NCBI GenBank assembly: GCA_048013815.1
Contig: CM106585.1
Location: forward strand, 19,716,001 to 19,780,000
Direction: 5' to 3'
Length of the DNA: 64,000 nucleotides
Origin: Setoptus koraiensis
Taxonomy: Eukaryota; Animalia; Arthropoda
Shown here one piece after another: positions 13,772 to 41,287 of the stretch. Position 1 is the stretch's first letter; every line of letters starts with the position of its first letter. Below the pieces are notes generated by a model, which did no database searches, was not told where the DNA came from, and saw nothing but the letters and a program-made list of their open reading frames with translations. Position numbers and translations under genes: made by a program.

Positions 13772-14786
13772 ATGTTGAGCAAAGTGCATTATTTACCTAT
13801 TATCACCTTCATATTGATGCCGTCCAGTTTCATCATCACGTAAGTGCCATACTCATAACAACAGGCCAAAACACTTATCAAACAACGAGCCTATCTAATG
13901 CCCATCTCACTAACACTATCTTCCATCGTATTCAACCCGTGTTAACAAAACCATTGTTTTCCTCTTGTCTACTTGTCAATCTATGCACATCAGTTATCTG
14001 ATATCTATCTTTTTGGGGCATGTTGAGGTGACATTTCCCTACATATCGGACACTGGCGTACATGTACCAGAGAGTTGTATATTTAGTCAATTATTTAACA
14101 TTGTGTCCTTCCTAATGGCGGCCAACATTTATATTAGATACAAACAAGTGGAACAACAATGTAGAGATCATCTATTGCCAGACACAAATAGAGTGCTGTC
14201 AAGGAACAGACTTGCATTATTTGTTGGACTATTATCGTGTCTTGGACTATCGATAGTGGCCAACTTTCAAGAATTACAACTATTCACTATCCACATAATT
14301 GGCGGCTTCTCAGCATTTGGCTTTGGCCTCGTTTATTTGTGGCTACAAACTCACTCCTCCTACATGATGTATCCCATAGTCAAATCAGGTTTATTCGTTG
14401 CTAGAATTCGACTAGCACTCAGTATTATATTGACATGTACTTTTATCGTTAGCGGTGTGCTGGGCCCACTCTCTATGAGATACTTTCATGGTCGAGATCC
14501 AACAAAATGGCAACCAGACGATGGTGGTTACCTGTTTCATGTGATAAGCTCCATCAGTGAATGGTTGTCGGCTTTTGCGATTGACTTTTTTATTTTGAGT
14601 TTCGCCCATGAGTTCAAATATATGAGTATAAGCTCTCCAAAGTTCTACATTCTATCTACTGTTATTAACATTGAGGAGCGAAGGTCGATTGACTCGAATT
14701 ACGGCATCAATGTTGTCACATCCGATATCAGCAGAAGTCAGAGGGCATCCAGACAGACAAGGAATAGAGATCTAATGACAAGGTAG
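13772..14786 (+). CDS. DRAM: DRAM/Frag1/Sfk1-family membrane protein: join(13772..13839, 13994..14786), about 286 aa
   Basis: Exon 1 (MLSKVHYLPIITFILMPSSFII) ends at GTAAGT. Exon 2 contains FPYISDTG..PESCIFSQLFN, IVANFQE and SEW, with six hydrophobic segments. Confidence 0.88.
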
Positions 14787-16160
14787 GTTCTTGATGACTG
14801 CTGATGGAACCATTTTCTAGTATTGTTATCTCTCTAATTATGATTCCATCCTAACCCCACTCGTCTTTCTCTAATTTCAACTCACAATTCAGATCAATGT
14901 CTGAGGCGGATCAAGTTATAGGTTAAGAATGAATTAACAGTCAACAAGAGTGTCCACTCCCACACTATTGTACCCGACAATCAATCATGAATAAAAAAAG
15001 AGTCTATGATTTTCAGCTACTCTCTAGAATGATCTTCTCATCACTTCTGACCGCATTGAATTTGGGTTTAAATGCACCTTTGCGCATAATCTATTACATA
15101 GACTACCGCAGTGAGTGCAACATCACTTCGTCAACTAGTTTACTTTGTTGTTGGAGTGATGTTACATGCCAGTAGATAACAGTATCGCAATTATCGAGTT
15201 TGTCCGAATGTACTATACAATCTGAACCCGCTCTCACCCTGTGCTTAATTGTGAAATTTGCATATCTACTGTGCACTACGAATTTCACAAATTCTGCACA
15301 AGGGAAGAGAGAGCAACGAAAGTTGTTGTACTATTTGCGACCATGTCTAATCGCAATCGCGATCTCTAGAGTGGGCGATGGTCTTTCGCTTGCTAGAGAG
15401 GACGTTGACAACATGTCGCAAACACACTCACATACAGACTGTATGATATTGGTGAGGATTTGCAACATGGAGAGAGGATTCTAGATTTGCCAAGACTTTT
15501 CTGCGCAGACCGCACAAATGCGTGACTTATGCGGCTTTGTGGTGCACATTATCCCGATCGATTTATACGGCATGATGATGTTCGCGTGTGGAAGCGCATA
15601 GAAACGCTCAGAAAGATCGTACTCTATCTGTCATACACAGTCAGTCTCTATGTCCTTTTCACGTTGCATCTGGATGACAGCAAGAGTTGGTGTAAATGTG
15701 AAAATTGTTATGTCAACCGCTCCTCCCCCCCATGCACAATTATGACTGTTGCACATTTACGCAATAATGGGAATTTCGCTAATTATGCATGATTGAATTG
15801 GCAGCATTTTTTGGGCCAAATCTCGATGCAACATGTTGTCGGAATTGGCAGGTGCATAGCGAATTTGTAAATGTTATTGTGGTGCAAACGCAAGTGCACC
15901 ATGCGCAACCATGTGAGATATGTACGTTGAATTGCATTCAACAATTGCGCACATGGGGACTGATGGGGGAAAAGGGGTGTATTCGACCGACGAGATCTAG
16001 AAAATTTATTGAATTTATCATTCAGTGCACATCTATATATATGCGTGACAACAATGACAAACACCAATACCAATCATTATATATGATTGATATTATTTGA
16101 ATATTAGTCCTCACAACGTCACCACAATACAATATCGGAATCTGATCGGAATAGAGAACA

Positions 16161-19100
16161 ATGGATCAGCCAGTAGTGAAGATTCTCACGTTGGAGGCAG
16201 GACAAAATCACGACACAGACTTGCTAAATTTCGATAAAGGTTCCTCAGTGAAAATAGTGCCAGGCGCCAGCTTATTTGAGTATGATAAAATCAAAATCTG
16301 GACAAATTATCCCGTCAAGGGCAAAGAATTTGTTCGTGCCAACTATACAGAATTGACGCTCAATTATGGCGGCGACGTCAAAAACAACATCGTGGGCCGC
16401 TGCATGAACTGGTCGGCAAGTATAAAATTCACCATTCCAGGCAGTTACCATTATTATTTTGGACCGGCCAACGGCTCAAATAACAATCAACAGATACTTG
16501 GCTCGGGCTATTTTCAAGTGAGGCCCAAACTGAGCCTGCCCCTGGACTGCATTCAATGTCAAACAGTGCTGAGCAAAAATCTCGGCACCATCGACACTTG
16601 GCGCGACGTGCTCGCTGTCAGCTATCAATCAGGCTACAACATGGTCCATTTCACGCCCGTTCAAGTGCTAGGCGGCAGCAATTCTGCCTACTCCATAGCG
16701 AATCAGCTCGACATTAATCCAACTTTTGCGCCCGCCTCATCAAAGTCTGCCTCGTCCAAGTCGCTCGTGGACGAAGTGGCCAAAGTCGTCAAATTCATGA
16801 ATGACGAATGGAAAATGCTGTCCATTACGGATATTGTGTTGAATCACACAGCCAACGAGAGCAACTGGCTCTTGGATCATCCCGAGTCCGCTTACAATTG
16901 CCTCAATTCGCCACATTTAAGGCCGGCCTATTTGTTGGACAGGGCCGTGTACGCGCTCACCTACGACATGATGAATTTGCGCTGGCTAACCACTCATTCT
17001 TTGGGCAACCATGTGACCAGTGAGAACGATGTTAGATTAGTCAGACTTCTGCTCACCTCTTTTTATTTGCCCCAGCTCAGGTTGTACGAAATGTTCATGG
17101 TGGACGTCAATGAGGCAGTGGCTCAGTTCACGCTGTCCACAACAGGTACTACCAACACATCCGATGGTCCTTTAATTGTCCAAGATAGGCTGTACAGGCG
17201 CTTCAAATCTCAGGTGAACATGAGTGTTGCCCTGGCAAGGACAAGAGATGTTGATGAGTTCAGAAGTATTGTTGAAGAGGAGAATCGACGCATCAAGCGA
17301 ACGGTCGAAGACCACTTGGCCGCTGCTCTGGATAACATTTTCTCGGCCATTAGATACGAACGTCTGGATGACAACGGACCCAAGCTGAATGTTGTCTCAT
17401 TGTCAACGCCACTCGTTGCGCCCTACTTTCAGAACCTCAAACATTCTGGAAGCCGTGTTGTGTTGAGCGAAGAGGAAACCATGATGTATGAACAGGGCCA
17501 ATATTTGATGGCTCACAATGGCTGGGTTATGGGCTTTGATTCATTGAAGGATTTTGCCGCTGAGGGCAGTCTCATATATTTGCGACGCGAGCTCATCGCC
17601 TGGGGCGACTCAATAAAGTTACGTTATGGAGATAAACCCGAGGATTGCCCTTATCTGTGGGATCACATGAAAAAATACGTCCAACAACAGGCCAAGATTT
17701 TCCACGGCATAAGATTGGACAATTGTCACTCGACGCCCATACACGTCGCCCAGTACATGCTTGACGCAGCTAGATCAGTGAGGCCCGATTTGTACATTAT
17801 TGCGGAACTGTTTACTTCGTCAGAGCAAACTGACAATATTTTCATCAACAAATTGGGCATTACCTCACTTGTTAGAGAGTCCATGTCAGCGTCAAATTGT
17901 CGGGAATTAGGCCGACTGATGTATCGATTTGGCGGCGAAGCGGTGGGAGCTTTCCATCATGCGCCTGGCAGTCAGCCTTTGAGACCATCAATTGCTCACG
18001 CAATATTTTATGATCAGACTCACGACAACGAGTCTCCATTGATCAGGAGGACTCCCTATGATAGTCAAGCCACCAGCTCAATAGTGTCGATGGCGTGTTG
18101 CGCCTCCGGAACAAACCGAGGCTATGATGAGCTTGTGCCACATCATATTAGTGTTGTTGGCGAGAAAAGACTGTATCAATCGTGGACCAAGGACCCGAAA
18201 GTGGCCGTGTTGGGCGATGGTGAGGTGAATTTCGACACAGGAATCATCTCACTGAGGTATCTCATTAATGAATTGCATTCGCGGCTATATTCTGAGGGTT
18301 TTTCAGAGATATTCGTTGACCAGGTGGATGAAAATGTTTTGGCCATCACTAGGCACAATCCACATACATGTCGATCGATAATTCTTGTTGCCAGAACTGC
18401 CTTTGATAAAGCAGAAGATCCAAACATTGTCGGGCCCACAATACGCTCTATATTTGTGCCGGGAACTATCAAAAAGGTACTGTTTGAGTCTGTTATGATT
18501 GGAGATCCTGCCGATTACAAACGCAATGATAAATATATCAACGGACTGAGCTCGTTCCAATCTAAAATACTCAACGAGCACGTTGCTCCCGAACAAGCTA
18601 AACTGGTGCAGATAGATTTGTCGCAGGCGAACCAGGCCGAGGTTATATTCAACAAATTTGTTCCATCGTCTGTCTTGGCGCTGGAGTCGCACGCCAGCAT
18701 AAGCCAATCGGATGCCCTGATTAAGATCAACAATTGGCTCAATCAGCATATGCAAACCAATGGCAATACTGTTGTCATTCCACAAGTGATAAAAAACTTG
18801 ACAATGGCCGACATTAACTACATTTTGTACAGATGCGAGGGCGAGCAGGACGACGATCACGTTTATGATCTGCCAAATCATGGCAAATTCCCATATTGTG
18901 GATTCCAAGGATTCATGTTCACGTTGTCGCATGTGCACGATCAACAAGACCAGGCCCATCCGTTGTGCTGCAACTTGCGAGCGGGCAATTGGCTGATAGA
19001 TCACACTTTGGATCGACTGTCACGACGTAAATCACTGGAGAAATTTCACGAATTCTTGGAGGAACCCCTAGAGGCGGTGAAATTGTTGCCCAGGTCAATT

Positions 19101-20711
19101 GTGCCCAAATACTTTGATATGGTCATAATGAGCGTATATAATCTAATTGTCGATCACAAGTTGCCAGGCGAAATGGGTCAATTCGTGGCCACTGGACCAA
19201 GATTTGTCAAGCGATTGGCTCTGTCTAGTGTGGCCCTGGTGGGACAGTCCACGAGTGCCCCATTGGCCCCATGGAAGCAGGAAAAAGTTATCGTGAATGG
19301 CAATGCAGGCGCCATCGCTGAATCTTCGTTGCCGTTGCAATTTCCTACGTGCGTTTCCATTGCAGCGGGTCTGCCTCATTTTGCCAACGGATACATGAGA
19401 AATTGGGGCCGTGACACATTCATCGCCATGCGAGGACTAATGTTATTGACGGGTCGCTTTGACGATGCACGAAACATTATATTGTCGTTTGCGGCCACAC
19501 TTCGCCACGGTCTAATACCGAACTTGCTCGACAGGGGCTCCAACGCCCGTTACAATTGTCGCGATGCTGTCTGGTGGTGGCTGTACTGCATCAAAGAATA
19601 CATCGAGTTGTCGCCCAACGGGCAGGGTCTGGCACTACTCGAGGAACAAGTTCGTCGCTTGTATCCGTATGATTATAGCCAGCCCGATTTGGTGGCCGAT
19701 GTTACCGGCAGAGTGCAGCCATTGTGTGGCATCATGCAAGAGGCCATTGAGCGACACTTCGACGGAATAGATTTCGTCGAAAGAAACGCCGGAAAAGCCA
19801 TAGACGAGCACATGACAGAGCCCGGTTTCCATGTTTGTATAGATGTGGATAGAAGCACGGGCTTTGTGCACGGTGGCAATCAGTGGAACTGCGGCACTTG
19901 GATGGACAAAATGGGCAGCTCCGAGAAAGCAAACACCAAGGGCAGGCCCGCTTCGCCGCGAGATGGAGCCGCCGTGGAGATTGTGGGCCTCAGTTATGCC
20001 GTCATCAAGTGGCTCTCGAAATTGGCAAGTAAAGGAAAGTACCGCTACAAGGGGGTCGTTTCGAAGAAGAACAACGTCAAATGGTCTTGGGCAGAATGGT
20101 CCGCTAAAATCGAAAACAACTTTGAGAAGGAATTCTGGATTGAAGGAAAGGCGGCCCAGGCCCGAACTAATGTCTACAAAGATTTATGGAAATGTGAAAA
20201 CGAAACGCACGCCTACATGTTCCGGCCCAATTTCCTAGTGGCAATGGTGGTCGCACCGGAACTGTTCAGCGCCGATAAGGCCCGTCAATGCCTAGAGACA
20301 ACCAGGCAATTTCTTGTGGGACCTCTCGGAATGAAGACTTTGGACCCCGAATCGGCCCATTACTGTGGCGACTACGACAATTCTAATGACGGCCACGATT
20401 CCATGACGGCCCACGGATACAATTATCATCAGGGGCCCGAGTGGCTCTGGTTGACTGGTTATTATCTGAGGGCTCAATTGAAATTCAACGCCAAGGACAA
20501 TAAAGTGAAATTTCAGGAGAATGTCAAACACGTTAAGCAATTGCTGGCCAATCATTACAAACACCTCGAGCAGAATGCATGGTTTGGTTTGCCTGAGCTA
20601 ACTAACTCGAATGGCCAATTTTGCAAGGACAGTTGTCCAATTCAGGCCTGGTCAATCGGCACCATAATGGAGGCGGTGTACGAGCTGTCCAAAATGAAGG
20701 CGATCGCCTGA
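16161..20711 (+). CDS. AGL: Glycogen debranching enzyme (4-alpha-glucanotransferase/amylo-1,6-glucosidase), intronless, 1516 aa
   Basis: [61 protein letters not shown] and QAWS motifs. Confidence 0.98.
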   Translation: MDQPVVKILTLEAGQNHDTDLLNFDKGSSVKIVPGASLFEYDKIKIWTNYPVKGKEFVRANYTELTLNYGGDVKNNIVGRCMNWSASIKFTIPGSYHYYFGPANGSNNNQQILGSGYFQVRPKLSLPLDCIQCQTVLSKNLGTIDTWRDVLAVSYQSGYNMVHFTPVQVLGGSNSAYSIANQLDINPTFAPASSKSASSKSLVDEVAKVVKFMNDEWKMLSITDIVLNHTANESNWLLDHPESAYNCLNSPHLRPAYLLDRAVYALTYDMMNLRWLTTHSLGNHVTSENDVRLVRLLLTSFYLPQLRLYEMFMVDVNEAVAQFTLSTTGTTNTSDGPLIVQDRLYRRFKSQVNMSVALARTRDVDEFRSIVEEENRRIKRTVEDHLAAALDNIFSAIRYERLDDNGPKLNVVSLSTPLVAPYFQNLKHSGSRVVLSEEETMMYEQGQYLMAHNGWVMGFDSLKDFAAEGSLIYLRRELIAWGDSIKLRYGDKPEDCPYLWDHMKKYVQQQAKIFHGIRLDNCHSTPIHVAQYMLDAARSVRPDLYIIAELFTSSEQTDNIFINKLGITSLVRESMSASNCRELGRLMYRFGGEAVGAFHHAPGSQPLRPSIAHAIFYDQTHDNESPLIRRTPYDSQATSSIVSMACCASGTNRGYDELVPHHISVVGEKRLYQSWTKDPKVAVLGDGEVNFDTGIISLRYLINELHSRLYSEGFSEIFVDQVDENVLAITRHNPHTCRSIILVARTAFDKAEDPNIVGPTIRSIFVPGTIKKVLFESVMIGDPADYKRNDKYINGLSSFQSKILNEHVAPEQAKLVQIDLSQANQAEVIFNKFVPSSVLALESHASISQSDALIKINNWLNQHMQTNGNTVVIPQVIKNLTMADINYILYRCEGEQDDDHVYDLPNHGKFPYCGFQGFMFTLSHVHDQQDQAHPLCCNLRAGNWLIDHTLDRLSRRKSLEKFHEFLEEPLEAVKLLPRSIVPKYFDMVIMSVYNLIVDHKLPGEMGQFVATGPRFVKRLALSSVALVGQSTSAPLAPWKQEKVIVNGNAGAIAESSLPLQFPTCVSIAAGLPHFANGYMRNWGRDTFIAMRGLMLLTGRFDDARNIILSFAATLRHGLIPNLLDRGSNARYNCRDAVWWWLYCIKEYIELSPNGQGLALLEEQVRRLYPYDYSQPDLVADVTGRVQPLCGIMQEAIERHFDGIDFVERNAGKAIDEHMTEPGFHVCIDVDRSTGFVHGGNQWNCGTWMDKMGSSEKANTKGRPASPRDGAAVEIVGLSYAVIKWLSKLASKGKYRYKGVVSKKNNVKWSWAEWSAKIENNFEKEFWIEGKAAQARTNVYKDLWKCENETHAYMFRPNFLVAMVVAPELFSADKARQCLETTRQFLVGPLGMKTLDPESAHYCGDYDNSNDGHDSMTAHGYNYHQGPEWLWLTGYYLRAQLKFNAKDNKVKFQENVKHVKQLLANHYKHLEQNAWFGLPELTNSNGQFCKDSCPIQAWSIGTIMEAVYELSKMKAIA

Positions 20712-20980
20712 TTATTATTGCGCAAACTGTTATGTATGCGCTAACCGATTTATTATTGTTATTTGCTACATCTTTTTATGGAGATTATTTAGTTTAGAAT
20801 ATTTAGTCAGCGTGTGTCTATCAGATACTATAAAACTCATTCAAATAAATCATCAATGTTGTTGGGCCTAGCAGTGCTATAGCCAGTAAAGGAAAAATAA
20901 TTAGCCTTTGATTGTGTAATATAATTATAATTGTTATAATTGACTTAATTTAGCATCGCCGACTGAATTGATCAATACAA

Positions 20981-21955
20981 TCAAGTCTGATGGGCTGAAT
21001 ATTTCGCCATTGAATTGATGAGGCTCTTGAAGGTGAACAAGAGCTGCTCGTTGTTGATCAACGGACTCAACTGGCTGAATAGGCTCTCCGACAGGCTCGT
21101 CTGACGCTTCTTTCGACCATTGACCGTTGTAGACGAGCTTGGTCCCGTTAGACTGACCGCTCCCTGCTGACCCGGCTGGCCTAGTCCGCTGTTCATATTC
21201 ATCATGAACAGGTAGAGCAATATGAATGGTCCGCCTAAAACTATAGCGCCAATAACAACAGCAACTGCCACACAAACTATCTCACTGATACCAAAACCAC
21301 TGCTCAATAAGGGAAAACTGCTCGACCAAGAGGGCGATGTGGCCGCCGCCATCGACGACCCATAATAAGCCGGGTGACCGGCGCTACCATAGGCACTGCT
21401 AGAGTGCATGCTAGGGTAACCGGCCGGATGTGTGTCCAGGGTGTTGTAGCCGGCAGAAGTTGGATAAACGCCGGCGGTTCCCAGTTGTTGATTGCCGTAG
21501 CCCAATTCTAGTTGTTGGCCGTAACTCGTTTGAGCCGAGTCGTACTGGCGCCCGTTACGGCCACCGGTGCGATTGTGCTGTTGATTGGCTGTCTTTTTCT
21601 TCTTAGACGACTGGTGCTTTACCTGTTGTTGTTGCTGATTTTGGAGCGCCATCGATGATTTGTTGGTTGCGTCATCTTGAGCGACCACGGTCTCATTGAC
21701 GCCGCTCACCTGATGTTGGAGATAATTGTTTATTGAGCCGCTTGCATTTGAATTGTCTGCTTCACCGATTGCGGACACTGCATCTACAAGTGGCGCGGAA
21801 TGTGTTGCTGTGGCCAATTGATCGACGAAAGACGAAGATTGTTGCTGTTGTTGTTGTGATATGTTGTCGCTGCTGTTTGCTGATATTTCGTTGATGGCAA
21901 ACGAGGCCAGTATCAACAACATGCAGGCTGTGAATGCCAGAGACGACGACCACAT
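20981..21955 (-). CDS. Uncharacterised secreted/membrane protein (the ORF is open up to 22162)
   Basis: A signal-like MWSSSLAFTACMLLILASFA, a Q/S/G/Y-rich ectodomain, a hydrophobic stretch (IVCVAVAVVIGAIVLGGPFILLYLF) and an RKKR furin-type site. No family could be named. Confidence 0.7.
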   Translation of the reverse strand: MWSSSLAFTACMLLILASFAINEISANSSDNISQQQQQQSSSFVDQLATATHSAPLVDAVSAIGEADNSNASGSINNYLQHQVSGVNETVVAQDDATNKSSMALQNQQQQQVKHQSSKKKKTANQQHNRTGGRNGRQYDSAQTSYGQQLELGYGNQQLGTAGVYPTSAGYNTLDTHPAGYPSMHSSSAYGSAGHPAYYGSSMAAATSPSWSSSFPLLSSGFGISEIVCVAVAVVIGAIVLGGPFILLYLFMMNMNSGLGQPGQQGAVSLTGPSSSTTVNGRKKRQTSLSESLFSQLSPLINNEQLLFTFKSLINSMAKYSAHQT

Positions 21956-22814
21956 AATTGATGGTCTCTTATTGACTTGATCTTGTTGCTGTTGCTTGTT
22001 TGTTGTCATTAGACACACTGTTGTCCACTTGTTGAATATTGAGGATTTCATTGCACGCGGACGGATAGGAGGATAGGTGCTGGAAATTGGTTGGATTGGC
22101 CGAAGTGCAATCATGAAGCGACGAAAAGGATAAATGGACAGTCGAGCAGCTAGCGATCGCATTTTTATCGTGTCAGTGAGAGGCTCGTCTGATTTTGACG
22201 GCTCTCTGACATAGGTCTGGAAGACACAGGTAGGCAGGTTAGGCTTAGGGAAAGTGTCCAGTGGAAACGGGGACGCATTTTACTTTCACTAAACGCTGTC
22301 ACTTAAAACGCTAAACGTCTGCCATTTAACTTAATTTGCCATTCGATTTTACGGTTAGGTAATGCATTCATGGCCCTACTGACGACGATGTCTCATTTAT
22401 TCTATCTGATGATTGCTGGCTGCGGCATTGTGCCAGCGGTTAAAGACTCCAACAACAACAATTGACCATTGTTGTCAAGACCCGAGACAGACAGTGGTGA
22501 CAGCTTGCAACAGTTACTTGCTCTCATCCATCTTGGCAAGCGAGCGTCACGACGAGCCAGTTTATTGGGTGTTGTTGTTTATTTGTAACGTTTTATTTGT
22601 AATGTTTCATGTTGCAAACAAATTCATAAATGCAAACAGCAAATTAAATATAGACATGATGCAGTGGACAGTGGCGCCAGTAGAGACGTCATTTCACTAT
22701 TCTTACTATTGCATCAGTGTTACCTTATCCCGACTAAGTATATGAAAGTGATGAGTTGTGTAATTGTAATGTCATTTGTCATTTACTACTGTATATATTG
22801 TATTATATAGTGTA

Positions 22815-23698
22815 TTACAGTCCACACACCATATTGCGCGGCACGGCAACGTCTATTTATACGGCAGTCGATAGGCAAGATATTATATAATAATAAATAA
22901 ATAAATAAATATATCAGACAACAATTATTATTGTTATGGTAACATAATTGTCTGATTGCGTCACTACTCACCTATCATCTTTGGTTTGTCTAAATTCAAA
23001 TTGTCCATTATGGCCACAAATTCATCTTGTGTCTTTGTGAGGCGCGCATTAAACTTTATTTCTTCGCCAATGGTGGACACAGTTTTGCCTTTGTAATCGT
23101 GAGCTGGATACACAGCGTACTCTGGTGGCAGTGTGAACAATTTAGTGTGAACTGATTGATACAATTTAATTGCCGATCCCTCCTGAAAATCCGTCCTGCC
23201 GCAGCCCCTAATTAGCAATGTGTCCCCAGTGAACAAGAGTTTGTGTTCGTGATCAACTATGCTCATACAGCCGTTTGTGTGTCCTGGTGTGAGTAAAAAA
23301 TTCAATGTGACACTCTGGCCCAATTGTAATTTGGAGCCCTCGTCAACGTAAATATCCGCCTTGGCACCGCTACTTTTGGACACAACACTCTCAAGTTGTT
23401 GCTGCTTCGATGGCTGCTCATCGCTCGTTGATTGTGCCCTGTTGATGATCGCTTTCAATTTGGAATTTCCCGTTACGTGATCCGCGTGAACGTGGCTACT
23501 AATGCAATATTTTAGTTTCAATTGAAGCTCTTGCACATACTGAATATCGCGTTCCACTTGCTCCAACACACAATCAATTATTGCCGCCTCGCCAGTGGTC
23601 GCATCGGCCAACAGGTAGGTGTAAGTGGACGACACCTTGTCGAAGAGCTGCCTAAATAACAGGCCGGCGCCGCGTGATGTTGCCATGTTGCTGGCCAT
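22815..23698 (-). CDS. ETHE1: Persulfide dioxygenase (metallo-beta-lactamase fold): join(22972..23698, 22815..22852)
   Basis: LLFRQLFD..SSTYTYLLAD, HVHADHVTG, TPGHTNGC, GCGRTDFQ and PAHDY motifs. A 119-bp intron (22853-22971) leads to the expected DVAVPRNMVCGL end. Confidence 0.95.
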
Positions 23699-25884
23699 TT
23701 TTTCACTGATTAATACTGATTATTCAATTTATTAATTACTTACATAAAATTGTTACATATGAAACTGGTGTGATTGTCAGCGAATGCTTGTGTGCACGCT
23801 AATCTGACAATTGAGCTGACTGGCAATTATTGAGTAAATATGACAGAAATTGTAGACAGCAAAATAAAATGCATAAAGCACAATACTGATGAGTGTCTAT
23901 CGATCATTAGGATCAATGAATATTCAAATCAGCAATGACTCGTGACGTCGTTTGCTGTTGCTGTTGTCGCCTTAACAGTCTACGGCAACAACAACAACAA
24001 CACATTTGCACAATGTGTAATGGTAAATACACAATTTCCTGTCAGCTGTTGGTGGCGCACGCAGATGCCTGGCCAAGATAAGCTTGTCAGCTTTGCAGCT
24101 TTTTGTTGGCGTTGATTGCCTGTTTGCCGTTGTCTGGTGCGAGGACTGATTGTTGTTGCGAGTGAACATTGGCTCGCTTGTCGCCACCGGTTGCCACCAG
24201 CGGCGGATCCGTTCGAGCGGCCCGTTCGAGCGGCCCATTGGCACTCGAATAGACAAACAACAGACGGGACGGCCCGCTGTGTGTTGTTGTTGTGGTTGTT
24301 GTTGTTGGTGTGTGATTAGCTTGTATAATGGGCCAATTGCTGCGAAAGGGTGCAACTAATCAACTCAAACAACTTTCATCGTCATCAGAGAAGCTCGCTC
24401 AAAACTTCACCTCATCAGTGATTCATCGAGTGCTGCTGGCTAGCAGCAGCAGCAGCAGCAGATAAAACAAAATTTTCCATTTGCGCAAAGTATCGAATGG
24501 CTACATAAATAAATCTTATCTCATGTAGTAAGTTAGTCGCGGTAGTAAGTGTGTTTCGCTTCGGGGGTTAATATAATTAAGTTTATCATCTTAGCCAGCA
24601 TCGTAATGGTCGCAAAGGGCGCCACACTCAGCACCGGCAGCGGCGGCGGCAGCACGCCAGCCTCGCCAACAACGACACGCCAGCAGCGCCAACAAAAACA
24701 TGCCAGCAGCGCCATAAGTGGCCGAGGTGGCTCGGCCCGAGCCGCTGCCCGGACCGAGCCGTGCCATGGCGAGCTTGCCAGCTCTAAGCGAGCACTAATG
24801 TGGCGCTTGTGGCGCTAGTGGCTGCAAAGTGCGCCAGCGAGGCCAAACTGCAGCGAGAGCAAACTGCAGCGAGTGCAAACTCAGTGCAGTGGTCAACTGG
24901 TCAGTCAAGTGGTCAACAAACTGTTTGCGTTGCTGCGAGGGAGCGAGTGAGCGAGAGTTGCGGCTCCGTTAGTTTGCTGCGTTGCGTTATACAGGGCGCA
25001 CACATATGTGCATCTCGCCATATCTTGCGCTGACTGCGTGAGCGAGGTTGCCTGTTTTAAACAGGCTAAACAAACTACATAAACTAGCGGCCGGCCGCTA
25101 ATGGCGGCCAGTTGTTTGCCGACGACGACGACACGCTTGCGATATACATATATATTTATATATAAATAGTTGTTGTATACGCTGCGGTAGTGCGCTCATC
25201 AACGGCCGTTACGGCCAAAGTAACGGGCGGAGTTAATTGGCAAGTGGCAACACTCAACACTTTCACTCACTCACGCTTGTTGTTGTTGTTGCTGTGGTTG
25301 CCGGCAAGCTCGCAGCTACCTGTACGGGCGCTTGCACAGGTAGCTGCCACTGTCGCGACTTGCTGCCGGAGACTGGCTCTGCCTAATGGCCGATGCGCGA
25401 CAGGTTCACCAACGCCGGCCATTGCGAAGCCAATGGATGTATCGACGCGCACAGTTGATAGATTTGTGTCGAGCCATCGGCAGTAGCAACAACAACAACA
25501 GCAACTCTTACAACGGCAACACTATAGAAAACGCATAATAGAGGCCGCAGTCGCAACCGGAAGTAACTAGCAAAAGTTCCAGCCACGTGCCAGCCGGTGA
25601 CAACAGTGACAAGCCACTATCAATGTCATCACAGCAGCAACAACAACGACAGCAACAATTCCGTCTGCAATTCGCCCAGCCAGCTCAACGACCTCAGTGA
25701 AATGAATGGAGGCGACCTCAGAAGGCGACACGCTTCTCATATCTCATATCAAACAGCAACCATAACACACACACACACAAGTGCCAAATCATCAAGTCAA
25801 ACAAATCATCGCAATCAATTGAATTCAATTGATTAATTAATCCAATAATTAAATTCTCTCATCAATTTCTACTACTCTCACGCC

Positions 25885-28800
25885 ATGTGGTCGCAAAATG
25901 TGCTCGACCTGTGGCTGTTGTCGTTGCCCACCTTGGTGCCTTACATGGTGCTCATGTCAATGAAGATGATGGAACGCAAGACGCCATTCACAAGTGAAAC
26001 GTTTCTCTCAGAATACGACTACATCGTGGGTGAGTACACAACTTTGCCAACAACAAAAGCATGATTTTCTCACATGAATTTACAAAAATTGCTCGTGTAT
26101 CGCACGCGTTTGTCTATACGATCAGTGAGAATTTTGAGGCCTTAGTGAGTCGTTGTGCGCTGAAGTGAGCTGGTCAGAGGCCTGATTGTTATAGCCTCAG
26201 ACATTCGATGACAGACTGACAATCAATAATAATAGTAATAGTAGCAATGATAATAAGCAATATAATGCGAGTAATGGATCAACATCAAATATCTCACACG
26301 AATCAAGAGATCAAAACAAAATTCCAAGCAACAGACTGAAGTCAAACCAGCATCGCAGAATTTGAATACTCGCTATATCCTTTTGCTCAGAGAAATAGAT
26401 GCATCAACTTCAGAAGAAGAGGTCAAAGGAATATTCAAAAGCGAGGGATGTCCCTGTCTTCCCATACAATGTGATTATGGCCACAATTACAGCTGGTATG
26501 TTACATTTAAAAATGATGTTGATGCCAAGCTAGCTCTCCACTACATTCGAACGAATGTAACCGTTTTCAAAGGCAAACCCATAATGGCCATGTAACTCAA
26601 AATATTAATACCGCTCCCACGGGACCCGTAGTCAGCGCTCCTAATCACTCTAATGCCAACGTGGTAATGACCAGTATTGTACCATCAACTATAGCGCACA
26701 CATCTACTACAAGTGCTTCATATTCGCCACCGGAACAAACCGAGGCTGTGATGAGCTTGTGCCACATCATATTAGTGTTGTTGGCGAGAAAAGACTGTAT
26801 CAATCGTGGACCAAGGACCCGAAAGTGGCCGTGTTGGGCGATGGTGAGGTGAATTTCGACACAGGAATCATCTCACTGAGGTATCTCATTAATGAATTGC
26901 ATTCGCGGCTATATTCTGAGGGTTTTTCAGAGATATTCGTTGACCAGGTGGATGAAAATGTTTTGGCCATCACTAGGCACAATCCACATACATGTCGATC
27001 GATAATTCTTGTTGCCAGAACTGCCTTTGATAAAGCAGAAGATCCAAACATTGTCGGGCCCACAATACGCTCTATATTTGTGCCGGGAACTATCAAAAAG
27101 GTACTGTTTGAGTCTGTTATGATTGGAGATCCTCAACGACGATCAACAACTGGCTCAATCAGCATATGCAAACCAATGGCAATACTGTTGTCATTCCACA
27201 AGTGATAAAAAACTTGACAATGGCCGACATTAACTACATTTTGTACAGATGCGAGGGCGACGTTTATGATCTGCCAAATCATGGCAAATTCCCATATTGT
27301 GGATTCCAAGGATTCATGTTCACGTTGTCGCATGTGCACGATCAACAAGACCAGGCCCATCCGTTGTGCTGCAACTTGCGAGCGGGCAATTGGCTGATAG
27401 ATCACACTTTGGATCGACTGTCACGACGTAAATCACTGGAGAAATTTCACGAATTCTTGGAGGAACCTCTAGAGGCGGTGAAATTGTTGCCCAGGTCAAT
27501 TGTACCCAAATACTTTGATATGGTCATAATGAGCGGCACTTGGATGGACAAAATGGGCAGCTCTGAGAAAGCAAACACCAAGGGCAGGCCCGCTTCGCCG
27601 CGAGATGGAGCCGCCGTGGAGATTGTGGGCCTCAGTTATGCCGTCATTTAAGAATGATGTTGATGCCAAGCTAGCTCTCCACTACATTCGAACGAATGTA
27701 ACCGTTTTCAAAGGCAAACCCATAATGGCCAGGTTCAAAACTGTAATCCCAAATATTAATACCGCTCCCACGGACATAACAGCCACGCTCAACAGCAACA
27801 GGTAAACCCGATGATCTAACAGCAGCAACAAATTCTACAATGCCAAATCAAGATAATCAAAGCACTAAGACAACTCACAATCAGCATCCTATGTCAAGAA
27901 TGGTTTCAGATAACTCCTCTCCAGGAGATTCACATACAGGTGATTCTATACACGTTTGCTTCCATGAGAACATCATACAATTCTAGTGGAAGACGATCTG
28001 ACTTGTCAGTTATGAGTAGGAATAACCCTCGTAGCCATAATCGGTCGCAACTGAAGGAATTGAATAGCAACTCTATCGATAAACCCAACGATACTAAACA
28101 AAACACTTTGTCACCAGGGATAAAAAACAGTAACAGTGAACCAGCTGGAACTGAGAGCCTTCTCAATTGCAATCTATCAAAAGCGTCACCTTCGACCACG
28201 ACCAATTTAAATATTGATGTTAACGATAAGAATAACAATAATAGGAAGCAAACCAACAGCCAGGTTACACCAAATCAACAACCAGATAATCATATTTCTT
28301 CACGGGCCAAGTCCTCAGCCGGTGACCACCCAGCTTCTCGCTCAGCAAACATCAACCAGTATCACCCATCATCATCATCATCTGCTACTAATAACATACA
28401 GCAGTTACACCATCCTATCTGGGTCATGGAGGTGTAACTCGCTGTCTACTAGGCTGATTGTTGCAACTTAAAGTGACTTGAATTGTGTGCATTTATTCAA
28501 CAGATGATAATATTTACTGTATTCGTCTGACATATGGGTGATGACAACAGTGGACTTATGCGCCATTCGAGCATAAGTGACACTGACATAACAAGTGACA
28601 TAATGGCTGCGAATGATGCAAGCGACGCAAGTGAGTGACAGGAAAAGGAAGAGTGTAGCGGGCGCCCATCGCTCATGATATTCATAACAGTGTTTATGGC
28701 AAGCTCGAGTGGCGCTCAACAGTGGCTGTCGCTCAACAGGGGCTGTCAGATTGTTGAGCGTTGCGTCTCGCAGAGGAGCTGCAAACAAGCTAAAGGCGAC

Positions 28801-31800
28801 GTACAGGTGACGCGAATTCCTGAAAGTTTTCCAATGGCGCCGGTCAGCGCCGACCAACGCCGAGTTTCCTATTGACCATGCGGCACCGCACCGCATCTCG
28901 GCCAGCCACCACTTAACACTGCTGCCCGGCTACCTGACTGATTGAGCTAGCTCGCCGGCTGGTGCATGTCGGTCGTTGCCCATGCCGGCAATTCATTTTA
29001 GATGAACATAGAGAGAGAGAGAGTCAACGGTATTATTATTATTATTGCCTCTACTGAGCGCCGCTGTGCGATGTTATTATTTGACCCCGACACACACACA
29101 CACAGAGTTGGCTGAGTAGTTGCTTGCAGCGACTACTCAGGCAAATTTGACGCGACTTTTATAGCGGCGACGATGACGCTTTCAAGTTATATTTACGCAA
29201 CAATGATTGCACCGTTGCATCAAACAAGAGTGATTCTGGCCGGTTCGGCCGGCCAGCGGTTGCATAAAACAAACAACGACGGCACACAATTCGGCTTGTT
29301 GGCTCTCTCTCTCTCATCTTGTTCCTCGTCGCTCTTCGCACAGTCGCTCTTCGCATGGCGCCGTACACTGCAAGACTGCGATGGCCACTTAGGCCATCGG
29401 CTGCGCTGATAACATATTCAGCGAGCACACAAAATTGGTTGGCATCTTGCCATTTAGCTTGCCAACTTGTCCAGTGGCGACCGTTTTACACAGCGGCGAG
29501 ACACTGGACACAGCAATTGCGATACAACAATTGCGATACAACCGTAACCGTACACAACCGCTGCGGTGCAATTGTTGGCTTACAAGCGCTGTTAGCGAAG
29601 GGCCGAGATGCGACGCGACACAAAACGGCTAATTGATTGGCTCATTTTGGCAAATCACCTCATTTTCGTCTCATGCAACATTTTTATTTATTTTGTGCCT
29701 GCTTTGTGAGGCAAAAACGGCTGGCGTGCCACAGCGCCGTTATGACCAATGCAGGCTCCATCTGTCAGTCGGTGTCTGTCCGTCTCTATCTGTCCGTCTC
29801 TATTTGTCAGTCGGCGACCGTCAGCCGGCAACCGGCAGTCGGCCCGTTGTGTGCGATACGCTGTCGGTGGCACTGCGCGTCGTCGTCGCATAATGACAGT
29901 TACGTAAGATAGTAATAGTTATTTAAGATGCGTATAATAGCGCAAGTTACATCGAGCCACTCGACTCGAGTGGCCTCACAATCTGAGCCTTAGATGCGCC
30001 TGGCATGCAATCTGCGGCCAGCCATCGCGGCCAAATCTTGGCCAGCAATGGCCGGCAATAGGCACCGGCGAGCTGGCCAATGCCAATTACCGGCCAATAT
30101 CAATTGCTGGCCCATGCCAATTGCCAATGGCCATTGAGCCGGCAAAACAATATCGAGCCGCTAAGCGTCCGCGGCTAACGCGCTTCCACATGCGGAATCC
30201 ACATTGTGGATTCCGCATGCGCCCCGTCGGAGCCGGCGACACTGTCGGCCGGGCCTCACTCCATGTACATAGGCCGCATGTACACATGACATGTGTGCAT
30301 GCCGTATTAGGCGACGCTGGCCGTATTTGGCCAGCAAGTCGTACATAATCATAATCATCATCATTATCATATATGATTAGTATTAGTGAGTGTGTGTGTG
30401 TGACGCAACATGACGCTAATTATGGTCCATCGGGCACTCCACTAGGCGTAACGGCGCACAGGCCGCTAATTCGCACTAATAACTGCATGCCACTCTATGC
30501 TAATTGTTCGCCATGCCATCAAACGCGACATATCCGGATATGCTGCGGCCATAAGCGGCCCATCCAGACATATGCTATAGCGATCCCATGCGCTCTTGTC
30601 ACGACACACAATCTGTTCATACGACTAATTAATATCTCCTTGCCACGCCATTCCCGTCTGACGCTGTCACTTGGTCCCGCCGCTTAATGCCGCTCGGTCC
30701 CGCCGCTCAATGCCGCTCGGTCCCGCCGCTTAATTCCGGCCATCGGCCCGCGCGCAAATACGCGACCGCCGCGTAACATGCAACCGGCGCTAATGTCACC
30801 GGCTCACTGGCGGACACGCACATAATCCGGACGGACACACATAATGCGGACACACATGATCCGGACGGACACACAATTATACGGATACGCAATGCGGACA
30901 CACACAATTCACATTATAAGTGGGCGCGGGCTCGGCCGGCGCCGTGGTCGCCAACCGGCTCAGCGAGAACCCCAACGTCAAGGTGCTGCTACTAGAGGCG
31001 GGCGGCTACGAGAACTGGCAGTCGGAAATACCCATCATGGCGTCCCGGTTGCAGGTGACCGCCCAAGACTGGCAGTACTACACGGAACCCCAAAAGCACG
31101 CCTGTTTCGCCATGAAGGAAAACCGGTCTAGGTGGCCCCGCGGCAAGGTGCTGGGCGGCTCGTCCACGCTCAACTACATGCTGTACGTGCGCGGCAATAA
31201 GCGCGACTACGACCTGTGGGCCTCATTGGGCAACACAGGCTGGTCCTGGGACGACGTGTTTCCCTATTTCGTCAAGTCGGAGGACAACCGCGACCCGGAC
31301 ATCATCAAGAACGGCTACCACGGTGAGTCGGTCATTATGCAACCCTTGCTGCCCCCACTGCCCCCGCTACCTCATGTCGGCGGCTCTGTTTGCATTCCTG
31401 GTGCCCCCATGATTTATTTGCACTGTCGACTAACCGTTCAGTTGTTTCGTTTCATCGCACGCGTCGCTAATTGGCGCTAATTATCTCATCGGTGCCCCCG
31501 TTTGTGTCGCTCGCAATCGGTGGTCCGACCCGCGACGGCTCCCGCTGGCTCCCACCGGCTCCCTATTGGAATAACCGGAATCACTGGAATAACCGGAATC
31601 ACTGGAATGACTGAACTAATCGCGACAATGCGGATCGTCAGGCCACGGCGGGCCGCTCACCGTCTCGACGCCCCACTACACCACGCCCATCGGCGGCGCC
31701 TTCATCGAGGCGGGCAAGATCTACGGGTACCCCAATGTCGACATCAACGGCCAGCAGCAGGCCGGATTTGCCATACCGCAGGGCACCATAAGGCGGGGCG

Positions 31801-38122: not shown

Positions 38123-41100
38123 ATGGATTCGTGCCACTTTCTCAACTTTTTCTTCGGTCAAAAGAAAGCAACTACTGAGATAAGTAAATGCATAAATAGT
38201 TTAACTAACCTGAAAGGCAATAAGAAATTCAAAGTCAGGGATACTTCTAGCGGTAGCTACAAAATAAAAGATATCGATGATTGTGCGGAAAATCAACCTT
38301 CATCCTCAAATCATCTATCGCCAATTAAACAACTCAAGTCGAGATTCTTCAGTAACAATCAAAATGTTCAGCCCACAAGCAATCAACGCTCCTCAATTTC
38401 AACGGAACAATATGAACAGCCTCCAGCCCTGAGCGATAATATAGAAGATGCCAAGCGCAATTCGGATCCTCGAAGATTGTCGGCAAAAAGTGAAGGTGGT
38501 GCGAATTTAGAGGATGCGGCAAACAACATTTCAACTATTTCGGTTATCGATAATGGAGCCCAAGCAAAAGGAACACACTCAACCATAATGGTCTCCAGCA
38601 ATCCGCAAGCCAATGCAAAAACTAGCGTCGTCTATGTGAATCCTCCTGTATCATCAATCGTTGTAATCTGTCCATCAAAGTCACCTCCAGATCTAGAAAG
38701 CAGGTGTGATAAAGAAAAAAGTCCTAAGTCTGAGGCTAAGGACGCTGAATATATTGAAAATTCTAGTATACAAAGTCCAACAAAACCAGCTCCCAAGATT
38801 GGCCGGAAGAAACAGCAACAGCAAATAATCTATGATGACAGTCTGGATAAGAATCTTGAAAAACCCATAGCAACTGCAATAGTGTGCGACATAATCTCCG
38901 AGAACAGGAAATTATATGCAGACAGAAAATTTAGTTTACAAGACTTAAGTTTGCTCCCGAACTTATCGCATAGTGATGGTGATGAGAATGAACAAATTCA
39001 ACAAGATGAGAACAAGTCCAGCAAATTTGTTGATAAGTTTTTGCTTGAAGGTAAAAATTCAAATGGGGTTAAAGTAAGGAGTATTTGTGAATCCTTGAGG
39101 AGATCTTCAGAGGGAAACAACAGAGTTGATTTTGCTTGTATCCAAGATTCATCCTTACAAAGTAAACGACATATGATATCGACATCCAAGCCTACAACTA
39201 TCGTGAAGCCATTGCCACCAAAAACTCCGCCCAAAAGCTCCAAAGCTCGATATTTAAATTACCAATTGAGCTTGAATTCCATTACAAAAATACAGGATCT
39301 CTTCAAAGATGAGAATTTCATCAGAAAGTTCTTCGATTACTTCGAACCCATCGATTATTGCACACTAGCTCAAGTTTGCAAGATATGGAGAAAAACATTA
39401 TATAGTAATCACAAATATTGGACAGGTATAATTAATGTCATTGATTGCAATCAACTCAGGCGTGAATGTTTGGTGGATCGTGCCACTCAAAATACCAAAC
39501 AAGAGTCTGAAGTGAATAAATTTTCAATCATGCAATCTATTGATGAAAACAATAATGAATCAGATTGGTACACAAACAAAAACGCGCAATCACCCAATGA
39601 TTGGCCATCACCACCGTCTCCATTACCAGTACCACAACAATCGATTTGTAGTCCACTAAGCCTGGAGAAGACTGTTCAAAGTAATTCATTCAGTGGGTCA
39701 GAGGAACAAAAGAAACAAGTGAATTTCGAATGCCGTGAAGAGGTTATAGTCAGATCAGACACAAACGACGTTAATGTTCCAAACGAACAGACTTACCCAA
39801 CTCCATCGAAGTCGTGCTCTATACAATCTCAAATATCGACGTCTTCCAGTGGATTATCACTTTTATCGGAGTCTAGTAAATTTGAATCGGTCAAAACTAA
39901 ATTATATAGTTCTATAGATAAAAGGGGATTCGATGCCATTTGTTTATTCGGTGAGTCTACATGTCAATGAATGCGATCTATCAATCAAAACGATATCATG
40001 AACTTTCCTAACAGATTTTCTATCTCAAAACATCGAATATTATACAGGAGCGAATGACGAGGACATACTTGATTTGGTTAATAGACTACCCCCGAGGGTT
40101 CTATCGAGAATAAAAGTGGCTCGCCTCAATAATTCAGTAAGTAGTACTTCCTCACTGTCGGTGATTTCATCTACAAAGTCGATTTATATTAATTAGAAAT
40201 ATACCTTACCATTCATTTTACCTCAGAGCATAAGTAACAAGGGTCTGGAGTCTTTCATGGCCGCCATGACGAATATAAATGAATTAGAATTATCAGGTTG
40301 CAATGAGCTAACTAACAATATCAATCTTGCACCATTGAAGAGGCTAACAAAATTAATATTCACAGATTGTATCAATATTGCTGACGGGTTTGCACCAAAA
40401 TTGAGTAATATATTCGGCCAGTTAACAGATTTTACCATACAAGCTTACCATATCACGGATGCATTTTTTGACTATTTACAATCCAACGTGACCGGGGAGA
40501 AACTCACAGTGTTGGAGCTCCCTAATTGCAAGGAGCTTTCCAATCAAAGTCTAAGGATCATAGCTAGATTCTTTCCCAATCTAAAAGTTCTTTCATTGTC
40601 TGGCTCCAGCAAGGTAATCATTTATTTTTATCGCAGTATTCTTTCTCGAGTTTGAATTCAAACTTTATATTAGAGACAAAAATCTTATTCTCAACTAACG
40701 TTAACATTTTATGCCTCCATATGAAATTTGTCAAATGCCCGCGCTTGAATAGATAAGTGATGAAGGAATAGAGATAATAGCGGAACAATCGCGCTGCTTG
40801 AATAAGTTGGATATAAGCTGGTGTACACGGGTAACAGATGCTGCTCTTGAATGCATGGCGTGCGATCTTAGCGAAAGCCTCACGGATCTAGTTTTAGATA
40901 GGTAAATCTCAATGACTTTTATTCTCATTTTTAATGAAATTCGGGCATTACTAATCGATTTTTCAACATTCTGTCCTTCAACTTCTTCATAGGTGCATAC
41001 ACATAACTGATTTAGGCTTGGGACACATTGCAACAATGACTCGTCTAAGTTCTTTGGAGATCCGATGGTGTCCACAAGTATCCGACCAAGGATTGGAAAC

Positions 41101-41287
41101 AATTATCACCATGCGTTCTTTAAGGAACCTTTCAATCGCAGGATGCCATCAGATAACAATGCGCAGTCTACTATGCCTGGTCAGATCTCAATTGATTGAA
41201 CTAGAGTTGACCAATTGCCCCTCTGTTAGTTCAGATTTAGTTAGCTATTTAAGGAAAAGTCTGCCCAGTTGCAAAATAATCTTCTGA
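38123..41287 (+). CDS. FBXL16: F-box/LRR protein 16: join(38123..39950, 40048..40136, 40227..40613, 40753..40901, 40993..41287)
   Basis: An F-box (DENFIRKFFDYF...LAQVCKIWRKTLY) and FBXL16-typical LRRs (LELSGCN, DCINIAD, QAYHITD, LDISWCTRVTD, RWCPQVSD, LELTNCP). Four in-frame GT-AG introns. Confidence 0.92.

Follow-up and report, generated by a model that had tools for sequence, protein, structure and literature searches.

The first intron of a GMC oxidoreductase gene in the acariform mite Setoptus koraiensis harbors a mosaic of ~2.2 kb (26219-28444, + strand) that consists of five segments copied from a LARP4-like gene, four segments copied from the gene for glycogen debranching enzyme (AGL), and a 7-nt filler, as delineated by BLAST and repeat searches. 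Positions refer to the window, i.e., the whole 64,000-nt stretch of DNA that was analyzed, unless they carry the prefix L010, which denotes the locus of the LARP4-like donor. We favor, with moderate confidence, an origin at the DNA level by microhomology-primed, switch-prone repair synthesis (MM-BIR, FoSTeS, or SDSA together with theta-type joining). The mosaic looks like the product of a known kind of error-prone break repair rather than of a new mechanism.

Exon 1 of the GMC gene (25885..26029, + strand) encodes a signal or transmembrane peptide followed by EYDYIV, ends in phase 1 before GTGAGT, and shows 79 to 85% amino acid identity to its counterparts in relatives L032 and L033. Exon 2 (30921..31480, + strand) was recognized from Pfam and from searches with exon sequences; the exons were searched singly. 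Splicing of exon 1 (end at 26029) to exon 2 (start at 30921) restores the FAD motif DYIVVGAGSAG. The intervening intron 1 (26030..30920, + strand) is 4,891 nt long with GT..AG ends and lies in phase 1; both its position and its phase are conserved in two related species, in which its lengths are ~5.6 kb and ~1.2 kb. It is one of the few introns kept in this genome. A preliminary description of this DNA had placed a mosaic inside the GMC intron, and the conserved phase-1 intron with its insert confirms that placement. A search of intron 1 for structured RNAs returned no Rfam family at gathering thresholds, and the other ORFs of the intron had no Pfam matches.

Both donors are chromosomal neighbors of the insert. 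The AGL donor span (18106..20005, + strand), 6 to 8.6 kb upstream of the mosaic, lies inside an intact, single-exon ORF (16161-20711) that is identified by the Pfam domains hGDE_N, hDGE_amylase, hGDE_central, and GDE_C; the only AGL-like DNA elsewhere in the genome is the mosaic itself. The LARP4-like donor shares chromosome, contig, and strand with the mosaic and was found ~59 to 61 kb downstream, in an intact ORF of 1,109 aa (L010:2081-5410). Both loci have remained intact after copying, and, apart from the donors, the pieces of the mosaic and its flanks are unique in the genome. The LARP4-like ORF contains a LARP4-type RRM, which matches human LARP4 (PDB 6i9b, residues 85-165; E = 3.3e-24). 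Pfam gave no La hit in the 1,109-aa ORF, the PDB alignment comprises the RRM only, and the 460 aa upstream of the RRM are of low complexity; because a La motif was not found beside the RRM, we term this donor LARP4-like. The preliminary description had been right that no LARP4 parent is present in the window, and the parent, which it had proposed to locate, sits outside it. Its reference to “distant” donor genes does not hold, since both donors lie within ~61 to 62 kb on the same strand. In a genome of 48.7 Mb, the chance of both donors lying this near the insertion site is about 6e-6 to 6.5e-6.

The mosaic begins with L1 (26219..26323), a copy of L010:3187-3289 with 6 substitutions in 103 nt, and L2 (26321..26735), a copy of L010:3417-3841 that includes the RRM and has a 10-bp deletion relative to the donor. 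The AGL part follows, with A1 (26730..27133; AGL 18106-18509), the filler (27134..27140), A2 (27141..27260; AGL 18725-18844), A3 (27260..27535; AGL 18859-19134), and A4 (27533..27647; AGL 19891-20005). The mosaic then returns to the LARP4-like gene in L3 (27645..27773), a second copy of L010:3600-3728 and thus a direct repeat of 26504-26622, and closes with L4 (27769..27816; L010:4226-4273) and L5 (27817..28444; L010:4497-5114). All of these features, the filler included, lie on the + strand; the nine segments keep the strand of their donors, and their order is ascending except for one 241-nt back-step. The AGL part is bordered on both sides by the same 124 nt of LARP4 sequence (L010:3605-3728), as a direct repeat. 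This map agrees with the LARP4-AGL-LARP4 order described earlier and with the count of four AGL segments from a compacted parent (1,905 bp of donor in 923 bp of copy), and the LARP4 parts turned out to be skip-copied as well, three stretches of donor (127, 497, and 220 bp) having been passed over.

The outer limits required revision. Donor homology spans 26219-28444 rather than the 26180 to 28462 given in the preliminary description, although those ends do match a weak 9-nt direct repeat (26182..26190, + strand, with 28454-28462). The repeat stands apart from the ends of the donor-derived sequence, and 76 of 2,000 shuffles reached 9 nt (p ~0.04); it is possible that it represents a target-site duplication. 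The outer fillers had no donor match above chance. The product is frame-broken and noncoding, has no evident function, and probably only lengthens the GMC intron. An exact look-up of five mosaic ORFs gave no match, and a homology search with a junction-spanning ORF of 161 aa returned generic AGL fragments only, with no independent support for the junction.

The junctions between segments carry the main evidence for template switching. Microhomology of 3 nt accompanies the 127-bp skip at J1 (L1/L2) and the 757-bp skip at J5 (A3/A4), and the same length is found at J6 (A4/L3), where the copy passes from AGL to LARP4. The passage from LARP4 to AGL at J2 (L2/A1) shows 6 nt (CCGGAA), or 11 nt if one mismatch is allowed. 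J4 (A2/A3; 15-bp skip) has 1 nt, J7 (L3/L4; 497-bp skip) has 4 to 5 nt, and J8 (L4/L5; 220-bp skip) is blunt. Across the seven junctions scored (overlaps of 3, 6, 1, 3, 3, 4-5, and 0 nt), microhomology of at least 3 nt occurs in five, compared with an expectation of 5% per junction (P = 6.5e-6). The median segment is ~120 nt and the median overlap 3 nt, which fits a measured signature. The remaining junction, J3 (A1/A2), combines a 215-bp skip with the 7-nt filler, which is tiled by two snippets of the AGL donor, an 8-mer (18570-18577) and a 10-mer (18850-18859), with overlaps of 2, 4, and 5 nt (Monte Carlo P = 1.7e-4). The 10-mer, which occurs just twice in the window, stops where the next breakpoint falls, 18859|18860, at the right edge of J4. 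Among the parts of the mosaic, the J3 filler alone has the character of a short, TMEJ-type templated insert with priming microhomology; taken whole, the 2.2-kb mosaic is larger than what TMEJ usually produces. The idea that the skipped pieces are introns was rejected, because the skipped donor DNA is in-frame coding sequence without GT..AG ends.

These junctions bear the signature of serial, microhomology-primed template switching and thus support the FoSTeS/MMBIR and Pol theta options among the mechanisms that had been listed for the mosaic. We envisage that a DNA break or a collapsed replication fork in GMC intron 1 was healed by copy synthesis instead of simple rejoining. A free 3' end would have found a priming site of a few fortuitously matching bases in the LARP4-like gene ~60 kb downstream, copied tracts of ~100 to 600 nt, dropped off, and reprimed further on. 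A jump to the AGL gene ~8 kb upstream would have come next, with further skips within that gene and two stepping-stone copies of 6 to 10 nt at J3. Synthesis would then have resumed in the LARP4-like gene, at a point 241 nt upstream of the earlier exit; two more skips there would have been followed by joining to the other break end. By analogy with MM-BIR, FoSTeS, or SDSA, the enzymes may have been a Pol theta-type activity for priming plus a replicative polymerase, with theta-mediated end joining as the last step. All of the junctions may well stem from one event, as the reused breakpoint (18859|18860) and the young age of the AGL part suggest; against it stands that AGL and LARP4 parts have diverged to different extents.

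The copy differs from its donors by 40 substitutions plus indels, which are unevenly distributed: 5 of 901 sites differ in the AGL parts and 35 of 1,300 in the LARP4 parts, the latter being ~4 to 5 times more diverged (Fisher p = 1e-4, and still p = 0.035 when free evolution of the LARP4 donor is permitted). Polarization by a sister-species outgroup assigned two of the AGL differences to the donor lineage, the copy being ancestral, and three to the copy lineage. Between them, the two copies of the 124-nt LARP4 stretch show 6 substitutions and a 10-bp indel, which exceeds the prediction of the AGL clock (P = 2e-4 to 0.02); a single birth date for the mosaic therefore requires extra help. Such help could have come from gene conversion in which the donor, 8 kb away, overwrote the AGL part, from error-prone synthesis, or from different template alleles. 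Homology-driven recopying of LARP4 at a later break was considered and rejected, given that the LARP4 tracts next to AGL are no cleaner than the distal ones. The same GMC intron lacks the insert in two related species; the insert is lineage specific and of real evolutionary age. The orthologous introns of these two relatives were obtained, and in both only the exons align with the S. koraiensis gene, so that the comparison yielded no empty-site allele from which to read the outer junctions. In one relative, the AGL contig stops before the GMC gene.

The unequal divergence raises the possibility that the mosaic was assembled sequentially, with a ~1.9-kb LARP4 fragment entering the intron, a ~1.9-kb AGL fragment landing later inside it with a target duplication of ~240 bp, and at least seven independent microhomology- or theta-type deletions (10 to 757 bp) then trimming the whole. 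The enzymology would be that of the reading we favor, but spread over numerous events, in a streamlined genome with a bias toward deletion. Besides the greater divergence of the LARP4 parts, the ~1.9-kb span of each donor fits such a history, as do the templated snippets at a deletion junction, which are the kind of residue that theta-mediated joining leaves behind (Kamp et al., PMC8654963), and the strongly reduced genomes of eriophyoids (PMC7738191). However, the AGL copy has just 3 substitutions of its own and no small indels, yet 52% of its span would have been lost in three skips, and at a steady rate of loss, as fitted to AGL, ~3% of the older LARP4 copy should survive, compared with the >55% observed. 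If the events were independent, it would also be a coincidence of ~1 in 300 that the 15-bp skip ends at the end of the filler 10-mer. Moreover, sequential assembly would make the LARP4 repeat on either side of the AGL insert no older than that insert, yet the repeat is far more diverged. We therefore regard sequential assembly as a doubtful, if serious, competitor. A rolling-circle or eccDNA origin of the LARP4-AGL-LARP4 order was rejected, as the LARP4 arms exceed any possible repeat unit.

The other origins that have been raised are less probable. An RNA-mediated origin, in which a reverse transcriptase jumped within and between LARP4 and AGL mRNAs and a break took up the resulting cDNA, could draw on a genome with at least 58 RVT_1 matches and would agree with the RT-mediated intron loss that has been favored to explain the intron poverty of eriophyoids (PMC7738191); RT jumping uses microhomology too. 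Since both donor spans lie inside single exons, the lack of splicing is no argument against an mRNA template. Nevertheless, such an origin is highly improbable: it leaves the location of both donors within 62 kb of the site to chance (~6.5e-6), neither border has a poly(A) tract or an A-run, the copy ends at L010:5114, 296 nt short of the LARP4-like stop (5410) and without a 3' UTR, and the 9-nt nonadjacent repeat (p ~0.04) does not make a convincing target-site duplication. The RT template switching suggested in the preliminary description is thus disfavored, and the same applies to its suggestions of Helitron or Pack-MULE capture and of MDA chimerism. Mosaics of fragments from several genes are, as a matter of general knowledge, typical cargo of Helitrons, Pack-MULEs, and Pack-TIRs. 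Here, though, donor-derived sequence extends to both ends of the insert, where there is only a 7-nt inverted match; inverted repeats of at least 30 nt are absent from 14000-30000; neither flank (25700-26225 and 28441-30920) recurs elsewhere in the genome; element termini (TIRs, or 5'-TC...CTRR-3' with a hairpin) common to several genomic copies were not found; and the intron contains no transposase-like ORF. These observations make capture by a mobile element the least probable of the origins weighed here. It is only marginally easier to credit an artefact of assembly, MDA, or chimeric reads. Nothing in the sequence favors one: reads of the present-day donors, if joined into a chimera, would match those donors almost perfectly, in contrast with the 40 substitutions and indels observed, and the outgroup polarization yields changes in both lineages, including two sites at which the copy keeps the base of the sister species.

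The repair-synthesis reading can be set beside what is known of end joining in mites. The genome contains a gene for an A-family polymerase (DNA_pol_A), and a six-frame search of the genome detected no Ku domain, which is a weak negative. End joining in the spider mite is mainly driven by Pol theta, and LigIV was found in a few acariform species only, with no eriophyoid among those named (PMC13571142). It is conceivable, if rather unlikely on this evidence, that a switch-prone repair regime in gall-type mites, in which joining of the Ku/LigIV type is apparently missing, yields mosaics of this kind. Self-comparison of 264 kb (the 64-kb window plus 200 kb upstream) revealed one second skip-copy. 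The earlier proposal of an ongoing process that stitches local and distant genes together gains weak support from this second case, while its distant component falls away with the local position of the donors. If such a regime does exist, the same low-processivity, microhomology-primed synthesis would both stitch chimeras and drive the deletions that miniaturized the genomes of these mites, and, if patches are common here, the repair-gene repertoire (theta-type joining and apparently no Ku) would be tied to gain and loss of DNA in these mites. A single locus such as this one provides a further example and does not establish a principle. Yet the ~10 consecutive template switches, fixed in an animal germ line, have left a natural trace that is unusually easy to read: with both donors still present and datable, the sequence directly reveals processivity, the use of microhomology, and the choice of template.

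Among known systems, the closest parallel is with MM-BIR/FoSTeS chains, as in chromoanasynthesis-type rearrangements and in mitotic MM-BIR in human cells (PMC13065848). Both anneal serially at microhomologies of 0 to 6 nt, copy tracts of ~50 to 600 nt, leave their donors intact, return repeatedly to one template, and include some junctions that are blunt and some that bear filler; the mosaic may plausibly have formed independently of LIG4-type joining. In contrast with those chains, the mosaic is a fixed germ line event in a mite intron with only ~10 switches, its donors are strictly local (6 to 61 kb away, on the same strand) rather than genome-wide, and it brought no large gain in copy number. 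The “patchwork” insertions of TMEJ, or synthesis-dependent MMEJ (Kamp et al., PMC8654963), resemble the J3 filler, with its snippets of 6 to 10 nt from nearby and overlaps of 2 to 5 nt. TMEJ and the mosaic also have in common microhomology at most junctions and, where over-extended repair intermediates are joined, flanking duplications. Typical TMEJ inserts, however, measure tens of nucleotides and come from within a few hundred base pairs, whereas the tracts here are mostly 100 to 600 nt long and come from 6 to 61 kb away. Templated insertions of the TMEJ or synthesis-dependent MMEJ type were reportedly described by Schimmel et al. in 2019 and by Yu and McVey in 2010. Filler DNA patches in plants are said to have been documented by Wicker et al. 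in 2010, and abortive gap repair leading to internally deleted P, Ac, and Ds elements by Rubin and Levy in 1997. Plant filler DNA and abortive gap repair likewise involve patching by unrelated DNA, composite fillers, and skip-copies at microhomologies; the mosaic differs in taxon, in interleaving two ordinary neighboring genes, and in having more switches per kilobase than usual. With chimeric retrocopies made by RT template switching, finally, it shares the fusion of two genes in sense orientation, but it has no poly(A), mRNA 3' end, or clear target-site duplication, and its donors are neighbors on the chromosome.

In the window, G000:C1:19716001-19780000, BLAST and repeat searches confirmed a LARP4-AGL-LARP4 mosaic in intron 1 of the GMC oxidoreductase gene; positions 26219-28444 (+ strand throughout) comprise nine segments of donor origin plus one filler. 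The mosaic begins with LARP4-like segments L1 (26221-26323, from L010:3187-3289) and L2 (26321-26735, from L010:3417-3841), L010 being a 10-kb piece of the same contig and strand (G000:C1:19800001-19810000). Four segments of AGL (glycogen debranching enzyme) follow, A1 (26730-27133, from 18106-18509), A2 (27141-27260, from 18725-18844), A3 (27260-27535, from 18859-19134), and A4 (27533-27647, from 19891-20005), with the 7-nt filler (27134-27140) at J3, the junction between A1 and A2. LARP4 then resumes in L3 (27645-27773, from L010:3600-3728), L4 (27769-27816, from L010:4226-4273), and L5 (27817-28444, from L010:4497-5114). Copied tracts are 48 to 624 nt long (median, about 120), and every segment keeps donor orientation and ascending order except for one 241-nt back-step at the return from AGL to LARP4; because of this back-step, a 124-nt direct repeat flanks the AGL part. 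Reading frames differ between successive segments and stops are frequent; thus, no protein is maintained, and the mosaic ORFs are absent from the protein collections searched.

The AGL donor, at 16161-20711, is an intact ORF of 1,516 codons in which all four glycogen-debranching-enzyme Pfam domains were recognized; its protein is 83% identical to that of one Logan assembly and 46 to 49% identical to those of acariform mites (Halotydeus, Aceria tosichella, and Leptotrombidium among them), which identifies the source as an acariform mite. The LARP4 parent, absent from the window, was located on the same contig at L010:2081-5410 (G000:C1:19802081-19805410), so that neither donor is more than 62 kb from the insertion site and the earlier mention of a distant donor does not apply. 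This one-exon, 1,109-codon ORF has an RRM matching human LARP4 (PDB 6i9b; E = 3e-24); no La motif was detected in it, and the 460 residues N-terminal of the RRM are low-complexity and N/T/S-rich. The donor spans are nearly equal (18106-20005, 1,900 bp; L010:3187-5114, 1,928 bp). In the host gene, exon 1 (25885-26029, +) is followed by GTGAGT, and exon 2 (+), preceded by AG, begins at 30921; read by eye across the splice, the exons, which were searched separately, give the canonical DYIVVGAGSAG dinucleotide-binding motif. The position and phase of this intron are conserved in two relatives (contigs L032 and L033), where it measures about 5.6 and 1.2 kb, respectively, and no AGL or LARP4 similarity was found in either orthologous intron; the intron is thus old and the 2.2-kb mosaic within it a lineage-specific gain. 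The L032 intron (L032:1780-7425) contains an antisense 653-aa cathepsin-like gene (Inhibitor_I29 and Peptidase_C1), and in that species GMC exons 2 and 3 are fused into one 580-aa ORF, intron 2 having been lost.

Between neighboring segments, 127, 497, and 220 bp of LARP4 and 215, 15, and 757 bp of AGL were skipped. Splicing was ruled out as the cause, since the skipped pieces are in-frame coding sequence without GT..AG ends. Junctions J1, J2, J4, J5, J6, J7, and J8 show overlaps of 3, 6, 1, 3, 3, 4-5, and 0 nt, respectively (those near J6 and J7 corrected by eye for adjoining substitutions); five of these seven overlap by at least 3 nt, versus 5% expected per junction (P = 6.5e-6). The filler is fully tiled by an 8-mer (18570-18577) from within the skipped 215 bp of AGL and a 10-mer (18850-18859), snippets chained by 2-, 4-, and 5-nt overlaps; random fillers were tiled likewise in 1.7e-4 of trials, and an 11-mer at 18937 is a weaker alternative source for two filler bases. 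The last base of the 10-mer, 18859, coincides exactly with the point at which A3 resumes past the 15-bp skip; one breakpoint was therefore used twice, which suggests a joint origin of J3 and J4.

Copy and donors differ at 40 positions. When the relative's AGL serves as outgroup, three of the AGL differences map to the copy and two, both synonymous, to the donor, the copy keeping the ancestral base. The AGL parts have diverged by 0.55% and the LARP4 parts by 2.7% (p = 1e-4; p = 0.035 even with the LARP4 donor free to evolve). The two flanking LARP4 repeats are six substitutions and a 10-bp indel apart and share only one derived change. A stretch of about 20 nt (L010:3686-3705) holds five of these substitutions as well as the indel, and at 27953-27958 L5 carries a clustered multi-base change with an indel relative to its donor; a local hotspot of mutation, or else error-prone synthesis, may explain such clusters.

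Of the mechanisms listed in the preliminary description, template switching was supported, whereas reverse transcription, Helitron capture, and MDA chimerism were not, given the missing poly(A) and element ends, the local donors, and the 40 differences. No poly(A) was found at the mosaic, and the copy ends 296 nt short of the LARP4-like stop codon. Were templates drawn at random genome-wide, as expected of free mRNAs, both donors would lie so close with a probability of about 6.5e-6. Terminal inverted repeats, Helitron ends, transposase ORFs, and Rfam hits were not found at the mosaic or intron; in the genome searched (48.7 Mb, two contigs), the pieces are unique apart from their donors, as are the flanks, and flanking direct repeats are limited to one of 9 nt that does not adjoin the insert (p about 0.04). 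An assembly or amplification chimera was ruled out, as it cannot give ancestral bases retained in the copy beside donor-lineage changes.

From the sequence, we lean toward a single multi-switch event having formed the mosaic. Three points favor it: far fewer steps are needed, one breakpoint was re-used, and the AGL part, with only three substitutions of its own, is already missing 52% of the span of its donor and shows no small indels. Against it stand the unequal divergence of the AGL and LARP4 parts and the differences between the flanking repeats. Nested insertions followed by microhomology deletions seem rather unlikely, and they are equally troubled by the repeat divergence, because a target duplication would likewise be identical at birth. 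A resolution would call for error-prone synthesis, for two different template alleles, or for gene conversion in which the donor, 8 kb away, overwrote the AGL copy.

Self-comparison for similar skip-copies, proposed earlier for the whole genome, covered 264 kb of contiguous sequence and revealed only two young cases, both within the window. Besides the mosaic, an inverted FBXL16-like copy (44573-46285, from 38239-42833) condenses a 4.6-kb region into 1.7 kb in five blocks (73 to 98% identity), its skipped pieces again lacking GT..AG ends. Separately, a cluster of older local duplicates, direct and inverted (74 to 87% identity), lies within 9 kb at 188 to 197 kb upstream of the window start (L011-L012).

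A strong A-family polymerase match (DNA_pol_A) is present in the genome. Six-frame whole-genome searches that readily found DNA_pol_A and RVT_1 did not detect Ku core (PF02735) or Ku_N (PF03731), a weak negative; the classical end-joining pathway may be absent. Spider-mite end joining is mainly theta-mediated, and knockout of LigIV had no effect; among the Acariformes surveyed, which included Eriophyoidea, only a few yielded LigIV, none of those named being eriophyoid, whereas Pol theta is conserved (PMC13571142). This context fits a Pol theta-type or MM-BIR (break-induced replication mediated by microhomology) reading. A 360-aa ORF at 11424-12506 (-) carries a BRCT domain, with no polymerase domain in that ORF.

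The overall pattern matches that expected of MM-BIR with FoSTeS-type template switching, given the intact donors, 48- to 624-nt tracts, median 3-nt overlaps, one blunt and one filler-bearing junction, and a template revisited repeatedly; synthesis would have moved back from AGL to LARP4, re-entering 241 nt upstream. Template-switching repair is a known process, and the mosaic would be a newly added example. Tract length and overlap agree quantitatively with mitotic MM-BIR in human cells, where the median insert is 155 to 234 bp and the median overlap 2 to 3 bp (PMC13065848), and the stepping-stone filler at J3 is what abortive Pol theta cycles classically leave behind (PMC8654963).
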